Assembly: GCA_977017575.1 (NCBI GenBank)
Contig: CDRNVI010000195.1
Coordinates: 1 to 21,591 of the forward strand
From: Paramoeba atlantica
Lineage: Eukaryota > Protista > Discosea
Reading direction: 5' to 3'
DNA length: 21,591 nt
The notes under the pieces are model-generated. The model searched no databases and was not told the origin of the DNA. It worked only from the letters and a program-made list of their open reading frames with translations. The position numbers and the translations under genes were made by a program. Positions 8,763-21,591 of the stretch are shown here, one piece after another (within the stretch, counting starts at the first letter, position 1; the number at the start of each line of letters is the position of its first letter).

Positions 8763-8875
8763 GGTATAGGCAGCAAAGTTGATAGTTGTTGTTGTTCAAA
8801 AGTTGCTTCAACTTTTCATCAACCCTTATCCTTTTAAAACAACACAAAAACAACACAATTCTTTTTATCAAAAAG

Positions 8876-8991
8876 AAAAAACTTTTTTTGAAACTTTGAT
8901 GACTAGATAATAAGAGTATTTTGAAGTGTTGAAAAAAACTTTTTTTGAGACTTTGATGACTAATAATAAGAGTTGTTTTAGAGTCATCAAA
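8876..8991. repeat. Two ~42-bp direct repeats plus an inverted copy of their TTTGATGACT core
   Basis: aaaaaactttttttga(a/g)actttgatgacta..taataagagt occurs at 8876-8917 and 8933-8973; agtcatcaaa occurs at 8982-8991. Confidence 0.8.
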
Positions 8992-9325
8992 AAAAAGAAA
9001 ATTGATTTTTAATTCATTCCAAAATTTTTTTTTTTATTTTTTCTGCTGCTTTCTCTTCTTCTTTTTTCCCTGCCACTTCTAATCTCAGGGGGAAGACAAT
9101 CAGCTTTTCAATTTCTCTCTTTCTTTTATTTTACCTCTAAAAAAAATGGATGAGACTCTTTTTTGTCTGTTGGGAATTTTAACCATTGGAGTTGGGATCA
9201 ACAGCTCTTTTTTTCAACACTTTTCAATTTCCAATTTAATTTTTCAAGAAAAAACAAAAAAATTTGTATTTTTGTTTTGGAGTTTTTTTAATTCCAACTC
9301 ATGAATATATTTTGTAGAGCTATAG

Positions 9326-11583
9326 ATGTCTTTAATTACATCAATCAAGAAAGGAGACTATGTTAAAATCTCCAACTGTGAGGATTATGGATATGTTCAG
9401 GATGCTGCCTACTTCCAGAATGAATACCATCTCACTCTTATCTGGGCAGAAATAGGAAGAAGAAAAGATGTATCATTTGTTGATATTTCTTTTGTTTCTT
9501 GTTTTGAACCAGTGCATGATCAAGGTATGCTTTGCCCAGAGTGCAAAATCCTAATGCAACAAATGGTTTGCTTTTTTTTTCTTTGATAATTTTAAAGTTT
9601 TCTTAAACTAAACTTCTTTTGAATAGATTAACAAAACAACAAGTGAAATATTTTTGATATGTCCATCATATCACTTGTGATTTGCTCTAAAATTTGATTG
9701 AACTATTTGCTTTCAGACTTCACAAAAACCTACACTTCAATCAAGCTTGGTGTTGATGATTGTGATGATACTTGGAACTGGGTACAAAGTTGGTGATCAA
9801 ACTCAACAGAGGTGGCCATACCAAAATGGGCTCAATTATTGATCCCTGAAGAGTACCATTCTCAAAAGTTTACATCAGTTATTTCATTGCTCAACTGGGT
9901 GATCAAGAAGTTGTCATCAGAAAGATGAAGGCAGGTGCCCTTGGAAAAAGTTCTTGGTATTTGATTCTCAAGCTTTTTTGAAAGGAACTCCTCCTCCCCA
10001 AGATGCAATTTGTACAGTTTATCAAGAGTATGATGGAGAGGGAAATCTTTCTTCAAAACCTGCTAACCATGCTCTCTAGAACCCAGGGGAACATAAAAAA
10101 CCTCAAGCAGTGTTAGCAATGAGAAAGGATTGGATTGAACACCTTGAAAAATCATAAAGTATCACCTTAAGTGAGACAATTCTAAGTTTTCAAGAAAAAC
10201 TAGTTGAGAGTGATCTCTCTCCATTAACAAAAGTGAATCTCATTTAACAAAATTCAAAGATGGGAAATACTTTGAAATATCAGAAACAAAAGGTTTTTTT
10301 TTCTTTTTTTTTCTTTTTTTCTTTTTTTTTTTTTCTTTTTTTTTTTCTTTTTTTTTTGTGAATCAATTTATATGGATTGATTGAATATTCTTCCAACAAT
10401 TGTTTCAAGAATCACAAATTTTTGATGTTGAGAAAATGGTTTTATATCCTTATACAGGAGAGGTCTCATTCAAATTTGGGTTTGAAGATTATTCCTTTGT
10501 CTTCATTGAACTCAGTTCAAAGATTCTAATTGCCAATTATGTAAAACCAAATATGAAAGAATTTTTCATCGATGGTGTTTTTAAATTATCCCCCTCTTTA
10601 CAACTGATAATTCTTGGTGTTCTCCTAAGAGGTTTGTTATCTTCCATTTGAAAAAAAAAATTTAATTTATTTTTATTTTTTTAATAATTCTTTTTCATGT
10701 TAGAGGATACAAAAGATAAAATACATGGAACAAATTTTTATCCTCTATCTTGTTTATTAATAAATCGAAAAACTGAATTTACCTATCTCCAGTGGTTTGC
10801 TGACCTCAAATATATTGGGTTGGAATTGAATGATTGTTCTATTTTAACTGATATGGAGTTTGGTATTAGAAATACAGGTTGATTATTTGAATAACAATTA
10901 TTTTCTTTTTTTACTTTTATTGATTTATTTTGTTTTAATAGGAAAAGTAATGTAGGAGGAGTTTGAATGGAAGTTATGTTACTTCCATGTGATCATGAAT
11001 GCTAAGGACAAGTTAAAAGCCTTTGAAGTTCTGAAAAAAATTTATTTTTTTTATCTTGGGGTATTGAAAGAAATGAAAGAACAAAAAGATGAGAAACAAA
11101 CAGAAAATGTATGGAAAAATTTTCAAATTGCTATTACTTATTCAAAAGAAAAGCTTTGGTTTGGATTTTGATTTATTTTATTTTTTTTTTTTTCTTTTGA
11201 AAAATGAAACAAGTGTATAAAGTAAAATTTATATTTTATTTTTTGTTTTTAGGCTTGAATATATGGAGAAATGGATAATTCTTCATTTGTCATAATAGAT
11301 TGGAGGAAAAATAAATAATTTGATTGAGAGATTCAATTGATACCTGAAAGAAACTCTTTTTTGAGGTCAAACATACTCCAATGCTACAACAATTGTTGAC
11401 ATCTTTAGTTGATATTTTTCAATTTTAGAAACTGTTCTGGTGCCCTATACATTGCAAAAAACTAATAAATTTTTTCAAAAGATTTACAAATCAAATCAAT
11501 TAAGGTGATAATTCTATCTGAAAGAAACGAAAAACATCAAAGCATAAGGTGTGCTAAAAAAGAAATCTTTTGTTTTTCTTTGA
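9326..11583 (+). mobile_element. Mutator/MULE-family DDE transposase pseudogene with spliceosomal introns
   Basis: Motifs lie in canonical order: EFFIDGVFKLSPSLQL (D at 10571), YPLSCLLINRKTEFTYLQWF, ILTDMEFGIRN (D at 10850), KLCYFH (CxxH, 10977-10988) and INNLIERFN (E at 11326). GT-AG introns at 10293-10409, 10632-10703, 10878-10941 and ~11159-11252 join these in phase; another starts at 9566. There are many in-frame stops. The exon structure of 9326-10290 is uncertain and no TIRs were found. Confidence 0.88.
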
Positions 11584-12605
11584 TTTTCTCAATTCTTTCT
11601 TTTGATTGTATGTGGAAAAGTGAAATGATTGATTCGGTGGTGTTGTTTTTAATAGTTTGTGAATAAAAAAAAAAGAAAAGAATAACAAACTAAAACATTC
11701 ACTTGAAATATGAATAAAAAAGTTCATTGGTAAATTAAACAATCTATCATATATCTTTCCAAACCTTTCAACTCTTCTTTTCTTTCAATTTCTTTCTTTT
11801 CTCTTTCTGTTTTTCTATTTTTTTCTCACTCGCTGCTTTCTTTTCCAAAAAAAAAAAAAAAATCCAATTCCCAATCAAATGTTGCCACATCAGCCATTTT
11901 CTTTTTCTTTTTTTGGTTTTTTTTTTAGTTTTTTGTTTTGAACAGTTTTTTTTTTTCTTTTTTGTTTGTGAGAAAGAAAGAAAAAAAGAAAAAGAAAGAG
12001 AAAGAGAAAGATTCAACAAAAAAGAGAAAAAAACAAAAAAAAATAAAGAAAAAGGATTGTATGACCAAAATTAATTGAAAAGATCCAAATGCAAACCAAA
12101 AATAAGATTGAAGAAGAAAAAAAAAAAAAGAATTGAATTTGTATTGGTCCTATTTTGATGGAAGCTTGAACAACTAAGAAAAAATAAGAATATTTGAATT
12201 CTTTTTCACCTCTTTGCCAAATTTCAAGAAAAAAAATTGCATTCAAAATAAAAATCAGTTTTTTGGCAAAAAAGTTTTTCTTTTTTGTTTTTTGTTTTTG
12301 TTTGATTTTTGTGTTTGGTTTTTGTTTTTTGAAAGATGAGAAAAATAGACTTTTAGAAATTAAGAAATTTTTGGTTTTTTCAATGTATCACTTTTATATT
12401 AAGAAAGAGAAATGAAAAACCAATCTATTTTTCTCAAAGTGAGAAAGATAAAAGAATTCACAAGGTTTATCTAATGATCCAATTCTTTGAGATTTTCTTT
12501 CTTTTCTTTTTTCCTCTTCTTTTTCTTGTTTCTTTTTTTCTTTTTCTTTTTTTCTTTTTTGTTTCTTTTTTCTTCTTTTTCTTTCATCTCTTTTTCTTTT
12601 TTACT
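11443..12605 (+). repeat. Segmental duplication copy 1 (MULE C-terminal exon plus 3' flank)
   Basis: Colinear with 19684-20847, from ccctatacattgcaaaaaa to tttttact (1163 versus 1164 bp). Confidence 0.95.
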
Positions 12606-13054
12606 TTTTTTCACACATTTTTTTTTTTTTTTCTTTTTTTTTTTTTCTTTTTTTTTTTCTTTTTCTCTTTTTTCTTTTTTTCTTTTTTTTTCTTCTCTTT
12701 TTCTTTTTCTTTTTTGAAAAAATTTAGAAAAATGAAAAATTAATTCTTTTTATTCTTAGAATGAACAATAAAAAAAATCAAAAGGAATTCATTTTCTTTT
12801 GTATTGAGTGGAAACAGGATTTCTTTTTTTTCAATGGTTTTTTGATTTCTTTTTTGATTTCTTTTTTTCTTTTTCTCTCATTTTCTTTTTTTTTTTTCTT
12901 TTTATTTTTTTTTATTTCTTTTTTATTTCAAGATTTTGAAAGCTTAAAAATATGAAAGTTTGTTTTTTGTTGTTTCTTTTGAGTTTTAATCTTTTTGTTG
13001 ATATTTGGAATTTTTTTTGTTTTATTTTTTTTTATTTTAATTGTTTTTTTTTTT

Positions 13055-15178
13055 AGAAATTGTTCTTTATCATTGAAAATGACATCGTCTTATTTCCTGT
13101 GATTTATTGTATCCAAAGAATCCTATTTTTCTCTCAGATAAAGCACAATGTGATGTGATGGGTTAGAGGTTCAGTTTCTTTTTTCTAACATTTTTTTAAA
13201 CAATATTTAAATAATTAAAGTTTTAATGTTTTTTCCTTCAGAAATTGTTCTTTATCATTGAAAATTACATCGTCTTATTCCTTGTGATTTACTGTATTCA
13301 AAGAAATCTATTTTTCTCTCAAATAAAACACAATGATGTGATGTGAGGGGTTCAGTTTTTTTTTTCTAATATTTTTCTAAACAATTTAAATAATTTTATT
13401 TTATTATTTTTTCCTTCAGAAATTGTTCTTTATCATTGAAAATAATATCATCTTATTCCTTGTGATTTATTATATTCAAAGAAGCCTATTTTTCTCAGAT
13501 AAAGCACCTGATATGATATGAGAGGTTCAGTTTTTTTTTTTTTGATATTTTTTTAAATAATAACTAATTACTTTTTTTTATTGTTTTTTCCTTCAGAAAC
13601 TATTCTTTATCATTGAAAATACTATTGTCTTATTCCTTGTGATTTACTGTATCCAAAGAATCCTATTTTTCTCAAATAAAATACAATGATGTGATGTGAG
13701 GTTCAGTTTCTTTTTTTTGATATTTTTTTAAATAATAACTAATTACTTTTTTTTATTGTTTTTTCCTTTAGAAACTGTTCTTTATCATTGAAAATCACAT
13801 TGTCTTATTTCCTATGATTTACTCTCTCCAAAGAAGCTTATTTTTCTCAGATAAGCACCTGATGTGATGTGAGGGGTTCAGTTTCTTTTTTTTAATATTT
13901 TTTTAAATAGTAATTAATTACTTTTTTTTATTGTTTTTTTCTTTAGAGAGTATTTTTTATCATTGAAAATTACATCATCTTATTCTTTGTGATTTATTGT
14001 ATCCAAAGAATTCTATTTTTCTTTCAAATAAAATACAATGATGTGATGTTGGGTTGGCGCCCGTAATTTAGTCGTAAATTCGACTATGTCCAACCCCGGA
14101 GGGGCGAGTTCAAATCCTAGTTTTTCGATATTATAGAAAATTTTTCTGGTGCTGTAGAGTGATTTGATTGGAGTGAGGAGCTTTTGAAGAAGTGTGAAAA
14201 TCAGAACAGGTTACATCTCAGCCCTGTCTGCTAAAAAGTTGAGGGTAAATTCCCTTGGAAGGAACTTTGGATTATTTTCCCTTCTGATGTGCATCCTCCA
14301 GCCTGAACTTGCAGAAGTTCTAAAGTTCAGCATAAAGACCGACTGAACTAAGCTGAAGTTTAAAACTTCACCTCTCGTTAGAGGTTAAAAACAAACATAA
14401 TTTAATGTAATTCAAATGGCTTAGATTAAGAACTACTAATTGAATAAAGTCTGCCTCAAAAAGAAAAAAAAACAATGATGTGATGTGAGTGATTTAGTTT
14501 CTTTTTTCTGATATTTTTTTAAACAATATTTAAATAATTAAAGTTTTAATGTTTTTTTCTTTTAGAGAATGTTCTTTATCATTGAAAATAACATTGTCTT
14601 ATTCCTTGTGATTTATTGTATCTAAAGAAGTTTATTTTTCTCTCAGATAAGCATTTGATGTGATGTGAAGGGTTCAATTTTTTTTTTTCCAATATTTTTT
14701 TAAACAATAACTAATTATTTTTTTTTATTATTTTTTCCTTCAGAGAATGTTCTTTATCATTGAAAATTACATTGTCTTATTCCTTGTGATTTATTGTATT
14801 CAAAGAATTCTATTTTTCTCAAATAAAGCACCTAATGTGATATGAGAAGTTTAGTTTCTTTTTTCTGATATTTTTTTAAACAATAACTAATTACTTTTTT
14901 TTATTGTTTTTTCCTTCAGAAATTATTCTTTATTATTGAAAATGATATTGTCTTATTCTTTGTGATTTACTGTATCCAAAGAAGCTTATTTTTCTCAGAT
15001 AAAGTACTTGATGTGATATGAGGTTCAGTTTTTTTTTTTCAATATTTTTTTAAACAATAACTAATTACTTTTTTTTATTATTTTTTCCTTCAGAAACTGT
15101 TCTTTATCATTAAAAATCACATTGTCTTATTTCCTATGATTTACTCTCTCTAAAGAAGCCTATTTTTCTCAAATAAAA
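13055..15178. repeat. Subtelomeric satellite, ~175-185-bp monomer, 10 units (last one truncated)
   Basis: Units begin aga(a/g)a.tgttctttatcattgaaaat at ~13055, 13240, 13418, 13595, 13770, 13945, 14564, 14742, 14918 and 15092. Unit 6 is interrupted by the SINE. Confidence 0.95.
14050..14471 (+). mobile_element. SINE-like retroposon, 422 bp
   Basis: It is flanked by a perfect 15-bp target-site duplication, acaatgatgtgatgt (14035-14049 and 14472-14486). A B-box-like GAGTTCAAATCC lies at 14106-14117, and AATAAA precedes an A-rich tail (aaaaagaaaaaaaa). It has no ORF and keeps its CpGs, unlike the surrounding satellite. The A box is weak. Confidence 0.88.
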
Positions 15179-15599
15179 TTAGGGTTTAGGGCCTAATTAC
15201 TTCGTTTTGAACTACTTTTTTTCACAATTCAGAAAATCGAGACTGGTAGAAAGATGCGCCTCATTTTTGTCTTCCTAATGGCATATTTTTTTTTAAAATC
15301 CGAATATGTCACAAAAAGTTATAGACAGTTTACGAAGAGGTCTTATGTATGAAATTCACATATAATGATAGGACTTTAAAGTGGCACCCTACATATTGAG
15401 GAAACAAGTGAGCTGGGACTAATTTTTTTTGATAACATAATAAAAAAAACTATTTTCTAAAACTTGGACCAGCCAGATTTTTGATTTTGTCTCATAGAAT
15501 AAAAATAATTGAGAAAACATTTATATGATTTTTACATACAAACATATAATTTTAGTTTCCTCCCTACATTATCAGGTCATATATAAAATTTTTCATGGT

Positions 15600-16070
15600 T
15601 TTCCTTAAACATAGATTAATTTCATGTTTTTACACTACTCTATTATTTTTATTTTTCATTTTTTAATTTTGAGAGATTTTTATAGAGTCTAAAAATATGA
15701 GTATTTTTTCTATGTATTTTACATATAAAAAAACATCAATGAATTGGTACCTACATAATAGGGAAATATATAAAATTTTTCAAAGTTTTCTTTAAACATA
15801 GATTAATTTCATGTTTTTACACTACTTTATTATTTTTATTTTTCATTTTTTAATATTGAGAGATTTTTACAGCATCCTTTTATAAACATACTTTTGGAAC
15901 TTTTGGCTCTGTTTCTCTATTATAACAAATAATATTATTGCTCCCTACATAAAAATAAAATAGATAAATCTCAAATTGATTTTCTTTATTTTAAGATTCA
16001 TTTAATGTTTTTACACTACTCTATTACTTTTATTTTTCATTTTTTGATATTGAGAGATTTTTATAGACCT
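15600..16070. repeat. Three ~190-200-bp internal repeats in the module (mirrored at ~18545-19015)
   Basis: atgtttttacactact.tatta.ttttatttttcatttttt.at.ttgagagatttt recurs at ~15619, ~15807 and ~16006. Confidence 0.85.
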
Positions 16071-16644
16071 TTTATGTAAGCATACTTTTGAGAAAATACT
16101 TTTTGTAATGTGTTAATAAAATCATGTTAGAAATCAAAAAATTGATTTAAGATTGATAATATGTTTAAAAAAACCTTTATTGAATAGGATTTATTTTCTA
16201 TCATTCATTTTTCATCATTTGAAGCTTTTTAATTGATGTGAAAAAATTGACTAAATAAGGAAATTTACATATTTAAAAGTACTCTATCTTTCTATGAGGA
16301 TGGATTCAGGAAGAAAAAATTAAAATTTGAAGAGAAGCCAACATGTTCTTGAATTGGGTCATATAAATATTTTTTCAATTCCTTCATTTGATAGAGATAA
16401 ATGATCAACAAGTAGGGTAAATGGGTATATTTTTTGACTTAGTGAATTTTTTTTTGATTTTTTGGAGTGAAATTTTGTCTCTCCAATTTTATTGAAAATT
16501 TGATAGGATGGATAAAATACAAAGGGGAATCAGCACATATGATTTTCATTTTGAACAAACATCACATCACTGAGATATAGAGGGTTGTTGAATTTTTCAA
16601 CTTTGTAATATAAAAACATTGTTTTTTCTAAGTATTTAACAAAT

Positions 16645-16899: not shown

Positions 16900-18123
16900 C
16901 TCAGAGGATTGTTAGTGAAATAAGTTGATATTTTGATTTTAAATAGTTTATATATTGTAGATATATGTATTTTTTATTCCATCAAAATCTAAAGTCATTT
17001 GACTGAAATCGACAATTTTTTCAATGATAGAGTATTGAAAAAAAATAATAAAAAATAAAAAATCCCTATCATTGAGAGGTAAAATGATATTTTTGAAAAA
17101 TAAAATATAATAATAAAAGATAAAGCTTAGTTTTGTGAATAAAATGAGGCTATTTTGAATAAAATTGAAGAAGGTGACATTGAGATATTCAAGAAATACA
17201 ATTTTTGTTTGAATGGACTTAGAAAATTTTTAAAAAAAATCAACAAAATATGGAGATTGATAATAACTCAGAGGAAAGATAGTAAAATAAGCTATAAAGT
17301 TGATAGAATATAGTTGACTAAATATAAATATGTGTATTTTTTATTTCATCAAAATCTAAGTTGGTATGACTGACAATGATAGAGTATTTAATGATAAAGC
17401 CAATGTAAAAATCATAGAAAAATGAAAAGCACCTATCATTGAAAGATAAAATGAGATTATTGAAAAAAGAAACTATAAAATAAAGATAAAACTTAGTTTT
17501 GTGAATAAAATAAGGCTATTTTGAATAAAATTGAAAAACTTAACACTGAGATATTCAAGTAATACAATTTTTGTTTAAAAGGACTTAAAAAATTTTTGAA
17601 AAAAATCAACAAAATATGAAGATGATCAATAACTCAGAGGAAAGATATTGAAATAAGCTATAAAGTTGATAAAATATAGTCAACTAAATATAGATATATG
17701 TATTTTTTGTCACATCAAAATCTGAGTTGGTATGACTGACAATGATAGAGTATTCAATGATAAAGCTTATATAAAAATTATAGAAAAAAGAAAAGCACCT
17801 ATTATTGAAAGATAAAATAAGATTATTGAAAAACAAAACTAGATGAGAAAGATAAAGCTTTGTTTTGTGAATAAAATGAGGCTATTGTGAATAAAATTGA
17901 AGAAGGTGACACTGAAATATTCAAGAAATACAATTTTTGTTTAAATGGACTTAAAAAATTTTCAAAAAAAATCAACAAAATATGAAGATGATCAATAACT
18001 TAGAAGAAAGATAGTAAAATAAGCTATAAAGCTAATAGAATATAGTCAACTAAATGTAGATATATGTATTTTTTATTATATCAAAATTTGAGTTGGTATG
18101 ACTAAGAATAATAGAGTATTTAA
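16900..18123. repeat. Second satellite, ~366-bp unit, ~3.3 copies
   Basis: The marker ctcagagga (cttagaaga in the last copy) occurs at 16900, 17267, 17633 and 17999. The array is cut at 18123 by the second module. Confidence 0.92.
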
Positions 18124-19687
18124 TTAGGGTTTAGGGTCTAATTACTTTGTTTTGAATCACTTTTTTTCACAATTCGGAAAATCAAGACTGGTAGAAAGAT
18201 GCGCCTCATTTTTGTCTTCCTAATGGCATATTTTTTTTTAAAATCCGAATATGTCACAAAAAGTTATAGGCAGTTTACGAAGAGGTCTTATGTATGAAAT
18301 TCACATATAATGATAGGACTTTAAAGTGGCACTCTACATATTGAGGAAACAAGTGAGCTGGGACTCATTTTTTTTGATAACATAATAAAAAAAACTATTT
18401 TCTAAAACTTGGACCAGCCAGATTTTTGATTTTGTCTCATAGAACAAAAATAATTGAGAAAACATTTATATGATTTTTACATACAAACATATAATTTTAG
18501 TCTCCTCCCTACATTATCAGGTCATATATAAAATTTTTCATAGTTTTCCTTAAACATAGATTAATTTCATGTTTTTACACTACTCTATTACTTTCATTTC
18601 TCATTTTTTCATTTTGAGAGATTTTTATAGAGTCTAAAAATATGAGTATTTTTTCTATGTATTTTACATATAAAAAAACATCAATGAATTGGTACCTACA
18701 TAAGAGGGGAATATATAAAATTTTTCAAAGTTTTCTTTAAACATAGATTAACTTCATGTTTTTACACTACCTTATTATTTTTATTTTTCATTTTTTAATA
18801 TTGAGAGATTTTTACAGCATCCTTTTGTAAACATACTTTTGGGACTTTTGGCTCTGTTTCCCTATTATAACAAATAATATTATTGCTCCCTACATAAAAA
18901 CAAAATAAATAAATCTCAAATTGATTTTCTTTATTTTAAGATTCATTTGATGTTTTTACACTACTCTATTACTTTTATTTTTCATTTTTTGATATGGAGA
19001 GATTTTTATAGACCTTTTATGTAAGCATACTTTTGAGAAAATACTTTTTGTAATGTGTTAATAAAATCATGTCAGAAATCAAAAAATTGATTTAAGGTTA
19101 ATAATATGTTTAAAAAAACCTTTATTGAATAGGATTTATCTTCTATCATTCATTTTTCATCATTTGGAGCTTTTTAATTGATGCGAAAAAATTGACTAAA
19201 TAAGGAAATTTACATATTTGAAAGTACTCTATCTTTCTATGAGGATGGATTCAGGAAGAAAAAATTAAAATTTGAAGAGAAGTTAACATGTTTTTGAATT
19301 GGATTATATAAATATTTTTTCAATTCCTTCATTTGATAGAGATAAATGATCAACAAGTAGGGTAAATGGGTATATTTTTTGACTTAGTGAAAATTTTTTT
19401 TGATTTTTTGGAGTGAAATTTTGTCTCTCCAATTTTATTGAAAATTTGATAGGATGGATAAAATACAAAGGGAAATCAGCACATATGATTTTCATTTTGA
19501 ACAAACATCACATCACTGAGATATAGAGAGTTGTTGAATTTTTCAACTTTGTAATATAAAAACATTGTTTTTTCTAAGTATTTAACAAATAACCTGATGG
19601 TTTAGTGGTAAAAACTTTCTTTTTGATGAAAGTTATGAGTTCAATTTTCTCAAAAGTTCTTTTTTTTTTTTTTTTTTTTCTTTCCCT
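18124..19687. repeat. 1.56-kb non-coding module, copy 2, starting with TTAGGGTTTAGGG
   Basis: The telomeric tract is at 18124-18136, followed by tctaattac. It differs from copy 1 mostly by transitions. Confidence 0.93.
19591..19655 (+). pseudogene. Degenerate tRNA-like relic, copy 2
   Basis: TGGTTTAGTGG (19598-19608) and GAGTTCAATTTTC (from 19637), followed by a T-run. Confidence 0.5.
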
Positions 19688-20847
19688 ATACATTGCAAAA
19701 AATTAACGAATTTTTTCAAAAGATTTATGAATCGAATCGATTAAGGTAATGATTCTATCCAAAAAAAATGAAAAACGTCAAAGCATAAGGTGTGCTAAAA
19801 AAGAAACCTTTTGTTTTTCTTTGATTTTCTCAATTCTTTCTTTTGATTGTGTGTGGAAAAGTGAAATGATTAATCTGGTGGTGTTGTTTTTAATAGTTTG
19901 TGAATAAAGAAAAAAAAAAAGAATAATAAACTAAAACATTCACTTGAAATATGGAATAAAAAAGTTCATTGGTAAATCAAACAATCTATTATGTATCTTT
20001 CCAAACTTTTCAACTCTTCTTTTCTTTCAATTTCTTTCTTTTTTCTTTCTGTTTTTCTGTTTTTTTTTCACCCACTGCTTTTTTTTCCGAAAAAGAAAAA
20101 AAAAATCCAATTCCCAATCAAATGTTGCCACATCATCCATTTTCTTTTTCTTTTTTTGGTTTTTTTTTAGTTTTTTGTTTTGAACAGTTTTTTTTTTTCT
20201 TTTTTGTTTGTGAGAAAGAAAGAAAAAAAGAAAAAAAAAGAAAAAGAGAAAGATTCAACAAAAAAGAGAAAAAAACAAAAAAAAACAAAGAAAAAGGATT
20301 GTATGACCAAAATTGATTGAAAAAATCCAAATACAAACCAAAAATAAGATTAAAGAAAAAAAAAAGAAAAAAAATTGAATTTGTATTGGTCCTATCTTGA
20401 TGGAAGCTTGAACAACTAAGAAAAAACAAGAACATTTGAATTCTTTTTCACCTCCTTGCCAAATTTTAAGAAAAAAAATCATACCCAAAATAAAAATCGG
20501 TTTTTCAGCAAAAAAGTTTTTCTTTTTTGTTTTTTGTTTTTGTTTGATTTTTGTGTTTGGTTTTTGTTTTTTGAAAGATGAAAAAAATAGACTTTTAGAA
20601 ATCAAGAGATTTTTGGTTTTTTTAATGTATTACTTTTATATTAAGAAAGAAAAATGAAAAACCAATCTATTTTTCTCAAAGTGAGAAAGATAAGAGAATT
20701 CACAAGGTTTATCCAGTGATCCAATTCTTTGAGGTTTTCTTTTTTTTCTTTTTTCCTCTTCTTTTTTTTGTTTCTTTTTTTCTTTTTTTCTTTTTCTTTT
20801 TCGTTTCTTTTTTCTTCTTTTTCCTTCATCTCTTTTTCTTTTTTACT
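19684..20847 (+). repeat. Segmental duplication copy 2 (MULE 3' end), truncated by the telomeric array
   Basis: Matches 11443-12605; homology stops at ...tttttact, directly before aattaggggtttaggg. Confidence 0.95.
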
Positions 20848-20849
20848 AA

Positions 20850-21324
20850 TTAGGGGTTTAGGGTTTAGGGTTTAGGGTTTAGGGTTTAGGGTTTAGGGTT
20901 TAGGGTTTAGGGTTTAGGGTTTAGGGTTTAGGGTTTAGGGTTTAGGGTTTAGGGTTTAGGGTTTAGGGTTTAGGGTTTAGGGTTTAGGGTTTAGGGTTTA
21001 GGGTTTAGGGTTTAGGGTTTAGGGTTTAGGGTTTAGGGTTTAGGGTTTAGGGTTTAGGGTTTAGGGTTTAGGGTTTAGGGTTTAGGGTTTAGGGTTTAGG
21101 GTTTAGGGTTTAGGGTTTAGGGTTTAGGGTTTAGGGTTTAGGGTTTAGGGTTTAGGGTTTAGGGTTTAGGGTTTAGGGTTTAGGGTTTAGGGTTTAGGGT
21201 TTAGGGTTTAGGGTTTAGGGTTTAGGGTTTAGGGTTTAGGGTTTAGGGTTTAGGGTTTAGGGTTTAGGGTTTAGGGTTTAGGGTTTAGGGTTTAGGGTTT
21301 AGGGTTTAGGGTTTAGGGTTTAGG
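20850..21324 (+). repeat. Plant-type telomeric repeat array (TTTAGGG)n, internal in this window
   Basis: One variant TTAGGGG (20850-20856), 66 perfect TTTAGGG units (20857-21318, 462 bp) and a partial TTTAGG (21319-21324). The G-rich strand is on +, as expected for a right-hand chromosome end. Confidence 0.99.
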
Positions 21325-21591
21325 ATGCAAATCTCCAAGAACTGCGAAACCGTTTGAGGCAGGGATCTCTGAAAAAGGATAAATCACTTTTTCCTTCCCA
21401 GAAACACCAGTGGGGACACTCTTATTACAGTCATTTTCCTTTGTTTTTTCCTCTTCATCTTTCCCTTCTTCTATCTCCTCTTTCCCTTTCTCCTCTTCCC
21501 TACTTTTCTTTTTCTTCTTCTTTGCTGGCTTCTTGGTTACAGGTAATGGTTTGGTCCCAGTAGGAGTTGGTTCCTTCTCCTCAACTGTCTC
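21313..21591 (-). CDS. 5'-partial open reading frame running into the telomeric array; possible retroelement ORF1/Gag-like fragment or host exon
   Basis: 92 codons without a stop from the window edge: ETVEEKEPTPTGTKPLPVTKKPAKKKKKKSREEEKGKEEIEEGKDEEEKTKENDCNKSVPTGVSGKEKVIYPFSEIPASNGFAVLGDLHPKP*. The stop codon comes from the telomeric repeat itself. It is missing from the ORF track because it has no early start codon. Confidence 0.5.
   Translation of the reverse strand, partial: ETVEEKEPTPTGTKPLPVTKKPAKKKKKKSREEEKGKEEIEEGKDEEEKTKENDCNKSVPTGVSGKEKVIYPFSEIPASNGFAVLGDLHPKP

Follow-up and report, generated by a model that had tools for sequence, protein, structure and literature searches.

Judged by its sequence, the contig analyzed here closes with a telomere that appears to be genuine and terminal and to stand on a subtelomere of the usual kind, and distal to this telomere lies a 267-bp piece of an old LINE retrotransposon that continues to the last base of the contig. 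The most probable explanation, to which we assign a probability of roughly 60%, is that the LINE piece is a chimeric tail produced during sequencing or assembly and kept at a true chromosome end. The window is the entire contig C195 (21,591 bp), from an assembly of 45.7 Mb in 248 contigs, and therefore no sequence exists farther to the right. The features that bear on the join are these:

15178-15191, plus strand: ATTAGGGTTTAGGG, a short telomere remnant away from the terminus, opening a 1.09-kb subtelomeric block (pattern search)
18123-18136, plus strand: second copy of the telomere remnant and subtelomeric block (pattern search, repeat comparison and BLAST)
19684-20853, plus strand: array-proximal subtelomeric block (repeat families D7, D9 and D10; BLAST to L037 and L047)
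20854-21324, plus strand: telomere array, (TTTAGGG)x67.3 (TRF, 100% matches; sequence read directly)
21324-21325, no strand: junction between the array and the LINE fragment (alignment with nine other copies; the BLAST match begins with the array's final G)
21325-21591, minus strand: internal LINE fragment, 267 bp (90-95% identity to at least 17 copies; mapped on the full copy in C142)

The telomere and the subtelomere behind it

A preliminary description of this DNA, made from the letters alone, had reported a perfect telomere array ending TTTAGG|ATGC. Both TRF (7-bp unit, 67.3 copies, 471 bp, 100% matches) and direct reading of the last bases agree with that report. Since the G-strand is on the plus strand, the terminus points rightward, the left-hand 20.8 kb are chromosome-internal and the 267 bp are distal to the array. 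Eleven fetched contig ends terminate in the TTTAGGG repeat with the G-strand outward, in arrays of 558-1191 bp. The C195 array consists of the species' own repeat, has its G-strand outward, is of typical length and stands on a subtelomere common to other ends.

This subtelomere is a mosaic. One of its blocks, at 15177-16268, is repeated at 18122-19213 and in C218, C202 and C151 abuts the terminal array directly; the block next to the array duplicates window positions 11443-12715 and is common to C197 and C200, which shows the left side to be, in all appearance, ordinary subtelomere. Both internal telomere remnants (at 15178 and 18123) share the orientation of the array.

Two further observations concern the ends of the contig. 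The first repeat beside the subtelomere is a variant, ATTAGGG, at many chromosome ends ('...attaggg', followed by TTTAGGG units), as at window:20846-20856 and at the array-proximal boundaries in L036, L039, L040, L043, L047 and L055, and the internal remnants at 15178 and 18123 likewise start with ATTAGGG. At its left end (window:1-735) the contig carries a degenerate array made up of purines only, AGAAAGAGA-like, with 67-74% matches by TRF, such that the purine-only tract and the TTTAGGG telomere occupy opposite ends of C195.

A decayed piece of an ordinary LINE

The identity of the distal 267 bp is established by comparison with the rest of the assembly, where all of the at least 17 other matches are contig-internal and the best match to C195 is at 95%. 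The family to which they belong is represented by three full copies, delimited by alignment:

C184:~69600-76170 (L033): LINE, full copy
C165:~26280-32160 (L034): LINE, full copy
C142:33596-40185 (L035): LINE, full copy

These copies are 97.6-97.8% identical to one another over 5.9-6.6 kb. In the 6.59-kb copy in C142, ORF1 has 685 codons, without a match to any Pfam family, and is overlapped by an ORF2 of 1440 aa in which Pfam places, in order, Exo_endo_phos (2.8e-08), RVT_1 (1.5e-25), zf-RVT and RVT_3/RNase_H (3e-14). An open ORF1 of 685 codons persists in the C142 and C165 copies, and all three copies have an open ORF2, of 1231-1440 codons. The family's normal mode of insertion can be read from the C184 and C142 copies, which have an A10-14 tail and direct target-site duplications of 16-17 bp; the family's target sites are A-rich and non-telomeric. 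We take the family to be an L1-type LINE of the ordinary, endonuclease-dependent sort, with a predicted C-terminal RNase H, poly(A)-tailed and flanked by target-site duplications. It shares with plant-type L1 elements the domain order of ORF2 (APE, RT, zf-RVT, RNase H) as well as the poly(A) and the 16-17-bp duplications, a likeness judged from domain order and not from an RT tree, and it differs from them in the 685-codon ORF1 that lacks a Pfam match. The family may have been recently active. In its older copies, C-to-T and CpG decay is heavy. One copy is truncated within its endonuclease domain by a 1.1-kb palindromic (inverted-repeat) sequence (L016, reverse-complemented, 8842-9935; C199:~50065-51158) that recurs elsewhere on C199 and is also seen at L015:1680-2218.

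Placed on the C142 copy, the C195 fragment corresponds to element positions ~1784-2051 of 6590, or ORF1 codons ~565-654 of 685. It extends to the contig end without the last ~31 codons of ORF1, ORF2, the 3' UTR or poly(A). The stop-free minus-strand frame that had been described as reading into the C-strand is indeed present (21591 to 21325, entering the C-strand as ...SNGFAVLGDLH-PKP*, with stops in the other two frames), and its translation contains both the SNGFAVL and the KKPAKKKKKK that had been singled out. It is not, though, the intact ORF that it had been called, for its 89 codons come from the interior of an ORF1 of 685 codons and include neither a start nor a stop codon of their own. 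The earlier guess that a non-LTR ORF1 was involved has held up well, since the fragment sits in ORF1 directly upstream of the overlapping APE-RT-RNase H ORF2; the assignment follows from this position in the full element and not from the S-N-x-F motif. The search for a reverse transcriptase and endonuclease that had been proposed as a check finds both an AP endonuclease and an RT in ORF2 of the full copies, C195 itself ending at 21591.

To place the fragment in time we used a consensus built from 11 other copies over the same 267 bp. The fragment differs from it at 11 of 267 positions (~4%), and the other copies range from 6 to 16 differences. Most of the fragment's differences are C-to-T or G-to-A, many of them at CpG sites. 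It had been described as CpG-retaining, which is contradicted by its 2 CpGs (observed/expected 0.18) against 7-8 over the same 267 bp in the best-preserved copies. We searched the whole assembly for the fragment's private variants with an exact 27-mer, allowing up to two mismatches, and obtained C195 alone, plus one copy at two mismatches. With this divergence, 2 CpGs and a best match of 95%, the fragment has neither near-identity to a source nor an age below that of the resident copies, and it is a piece of an old LINE copy, as decayed as its relatives.

Two candidate origins are ruled out by these data. A young, CpG-retaining copy is incompatible with 11 differences in 267 bp and 2 CpGs where up to 8 occur in other copies. 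Capture of the mRNA of a single-copy host gene, which had been offered together with recent retrotransposition as the source of the tail, fails because the segment lies inside a LINE and occurs in at least 17 further copies. Recent retrotransposition is itself at odds with the ~4% divergence from consensus and its C-to-T and CpG decay, and with the absence of poly(A) and the 3' end. Outside CpG sites the fragment has 3 private changes in 247 columns and the 471-bp array has none (P ~0.04 under equal rates). A decayed fragment beside a flawless array implies either that the join is younger than the fragment's decay or that telomerase keeps the array perfect.

The junction

The array and the LINE sequence overlap by 1 nt (G), and filler, poly(A) and target-site duplication are all absent. 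After ...TTTAGG, C195 reads ATGCAAATC... up to the contig end. It had been asked whether other copies continue past this point: all nine other fetched copies do so, running through it as ...ctatttg|ATGCAAATC, which is conserved, non-telomeric element sequence. Flanks of 1.5 kb were fetched for ten loci containing the segment (C195 and the nine others), and telomere repeats within 1.5 kb were found at C195 only and at none of the nine. Overall, 1 of at least 18 copies touches a telomere, and this one does so via an internal position.

That a LINE adjoins telomere repeats at all could in principle reflect an ordinary endonuclease-dependent insertion into the array, or a family targeted to telomeres. 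A canonical target-primed product would be joined through its poly(A), whereas the C195 junction falls at internal position ~2051 with the 3'-most 4.5 kb absent, so it is not such a product. Poly(A), 3' end and target-site duplication are missing together at the junction, and a telomere-targeted family is contradicted by the nine telomere-free loci and by target sites that are A-rich and not telomeric. Because of this anatomy we regard both as excluded, their joint probability being close to negligible. Retroelements specialized for telomeres (Drosophila HeT-A/TART, Bombyx SART/TRAS, Chlorella Zepp and the endonuclease-deficient Penelope-like elements) are found at telomeres again and again, where the joint is made by their 3' ends. 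Their orientation relative to the G-strand is the same as that of the C195 fragment, but the C195 family does not share their recurrence at telomeres or their 3' joints.

Healing of a chromosome broken within a LINE was also considered and rejected, for its polarity is wrong: healing would need LINE followed by TTTAGGG, 5' to 3', whereas in C195 the C-strand follows the sense strand of the LINE and the G-strand precedes the antisense strand.

The polarity of the junction does agree with what had been claimed for it, in that the antisense strand prolongs the 3' end of the G-strand as would a cDNA extended from there; a random join would have this antisense polarity 50% of the time. It raises the question of endonuclease-independent, telomere-primed reverse transcription, in which the 3' end of the G-strand would have served as primer for cDNA synthesis on a LINE RNA, starting from an internal site, so that antisense LINE sequence was added past the telomere. 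For human L1, PMC4014453 (citing Morrish et al. 2007) describes an endonuclease-independent pathway in which priming is usually internal on the RNA and telomeres are frequent targets. C195 shares with the L1 events an antisense LINE on the 3' end of the G-strand, an internal start and the lack of poly(A), and differs from them in that the fragment is as mutated as old copies, lacks a known source copy, is visible over just 267 bp and is uncapped, and in that the host is a protist and not a repair-deficient mammalian cell line. Some copies of the C195 family do retain a long open ORF1 and ORF2. Nevertheless, several observations speak against this explanation. The fragment carries ~4% decay including private C-to-T changes, so the template would have to be the transcript of an old, dead copy, and none such is in the assembly. 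In addition, complementarity is just 1 nt, the known insertions of the family are all canonical, the addition is uncapped and the comparable tails on other contigs, described below, are not retroelements. We consider such priming improbable, and rate a shade lower still the full scenario of a living protist cell in which a telomere 3' end primed on a LINE transcript internally and was caught before re-capping or loss. If true, a wild organism outside the mammals would have undergone endonuclease-independent retrotransposition onto the tip of one of its chromosomes. A real join would be a natural case of retrotransposon patching or extension of a chromosome end outside Drosophila and engineered mammalian cells, and would bear on the relation between telomerase and retroelements.

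Tails beyond telomeres on other contigs

We scanned the assembly for the stops of G-strand runs of 2.5 repeats, in every one of the seven phases, and fetched 20 sites. The resulting survey of ends comprises 15 arrays, boundary matches on C159, C187, C196, C210 and C214 being set aside. In four contigs only (C195, C202, C197 and C171) did an outward array of terminal size give way to a short tail reaching the contig end. A new telomere cap is absent from all four tails, and all four contigs are 17-29 kb in length, about the size of a read.

The partners on the three sister contigs are instructive. The C202 tail (L036:1-1407) follows 5 nt of filler, is 1,407 bp long, matches at least 15 other contigs at 100% identity and encodes ATP-synt_A (atp6) and NADH dehydrogenase 4L (nad4L); we identify it as mitochondrial DNA. 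The C197 tail (L037:1-2021; 2,021 bp) carries a DUF2924 gene (E = 1.4e-38) and has a CpG observed/expected ratio of 1.03, the host's repeats being CpG-poor; because of this match and ratio we read it as bacterial-type. The 587-bp tail of C171 (L053:2005-2591) has no other copy in the assembly and is unplaced. These three tails are probably chimeras that should be trimmed before any biological reading.

The phase in which arrays stop links C195 to this group. Among 11 clean contig ends (the outermost bases of L038-L043, L049, L050, L052, L054 and L055), seven stop on the G-strand at ...TTTAGG and three at ...TTTAGGG. The commonest phase is also that of the C195 junction (TTTAGG|ATGC) and of the mitochondrial chimera C202 (TTTAGG|CAGCT), and C197 is in the second commonest. 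Since the C195 junction has the commonest phase of natural ends, it was a complete natural end that was joined and not a broken array, in the same way as in the demonstrable chimera C202. As a separate point, the stop of 7 of 11 ends at ...TTTAGG suggests a defined terminal nucleotide, which is probably the 5' end of the C-strand after blunting.

We therefore return to the chimeric tail as the preferred reading; it had been named at the outset among the alternatives, as an artificial join, and is the best supported of them now that other telomere-plus-tail contigs prove to carry mitochondrial and bacterial-type DNA. The starting end would be the real telomere on its ordinary subtelomere. The LINE piece would come from an old resident copy whose true locus is unassembled, and its attachment to the natural, blunt-ended tip of the chromosome would have occurred in a chimeric read or library molecule. 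Since sequence past a chromosome end cannot be contradicted by any other read, the tail would have survived assembly. Consistent with this, C195 stops 267 bp into the LINE although other copies, 5% divergent, were assembled right through; the sister tails of C202 and C197 are foreign; and the family inserts canonically, with telomere-free flanks at its other fetched copies. The outward telomere of normal length followed by a short, unrelated and uncapped tail to the contig end is what C195 shares with chimeric single-read tails in long-read assemblies, from which it differs in that the telomere is joined to nuclear repeat DNA from the organism itself. A literature search on telomere-end chimeras in long-read assemblies returned nothing specific. 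Exact-pattern scans of metagenome and genome contig collections, which may omit records of this genome, gave 0 matches to the junction sequence.

Three observations count against a chimera. First, the source locus is absent: no copy in the assembly exceeds 95% identity and the private variants are unmatched. This objection is weakened by the fact that two of the three other tails are likewise sourceless in the assembly; still, since the source locus is missing, an origin of this particular join in vitro or in silico is something we infer rather than demonstrate. Second, the join is clean, with its 1 nt of overlap as against the 5 nt of filler in C202, and would also fit end-joining or internal cDNA priming in vivo. 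Third, the polarity is as expected for telomere-primed reverse transcription, with the even odds of a chance match given above.

The same facts bear on whether the junction could be real, an intact telomere having been end-joined in vivo to a double-strand break in a resident old LINE copy. On this account the fragment's copy is found nowhere else in the assembly because C195 would be its sole locus, an old LINE beside a flawless array reflects the recent joining of two pre-existing sequences, and the 1 nt of microhomology without filler, the natural end phase at the join and the short telomere remnants already present within the subtelomere are all accommodated. Set against it, the interior telomere tracts that were fetched measure just 14-42 bp, and none of the other inspected sites has a long perfect array inside a contig; the three sister tails are foreign or unplaced, and none is re-capped; and the contig ends after 267 bp though the LINE family assembles well elsewhere. 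We consider an in vivo junction of this kind unlikely, if worth keeping in view, and take an equally tentative view of its possible forms, namely an end fusion, a translocation or the capture of a fragment that would leave a young interstitial telomere, the contig then stopping from low coverage.

For practical purposes, contig ends in this assembly carry probable chimeric tails past true telomeres, and so sequence beyond telomeres here should not be taken for biology without read support. For the organism itself, C195 also establishes which repeat its telomeres use, the phase in which they usually end and how one of its LINE families is built.

Finally, the survey brought up a second kind of association with telomere repeats. 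A repeat of ~3.0 kb without a long ORF and with internal 93-bp tandem repeats is present in at least 12 copies, for example at L019:5247-8279 (C142:40246-43278) and in L044-L047 and L052 (C143:~57090, C144:~52455, C194:~8675, C200:~25815 and the right end of C140). Beyond one of its ends, '...gggcaagagctataa', there invariably come 1-6 ACCCTAA units, after which the flanks differ from copy to copy; this is the polarity of an addition to the end of the G-strand. At the right end of C140 the other end of the repeat directly abuts the terminal telomere array. Candidate identities for the repeat are a subtelomeric block resembling Y' and a non-autonomous retroelement primed from telomeres.
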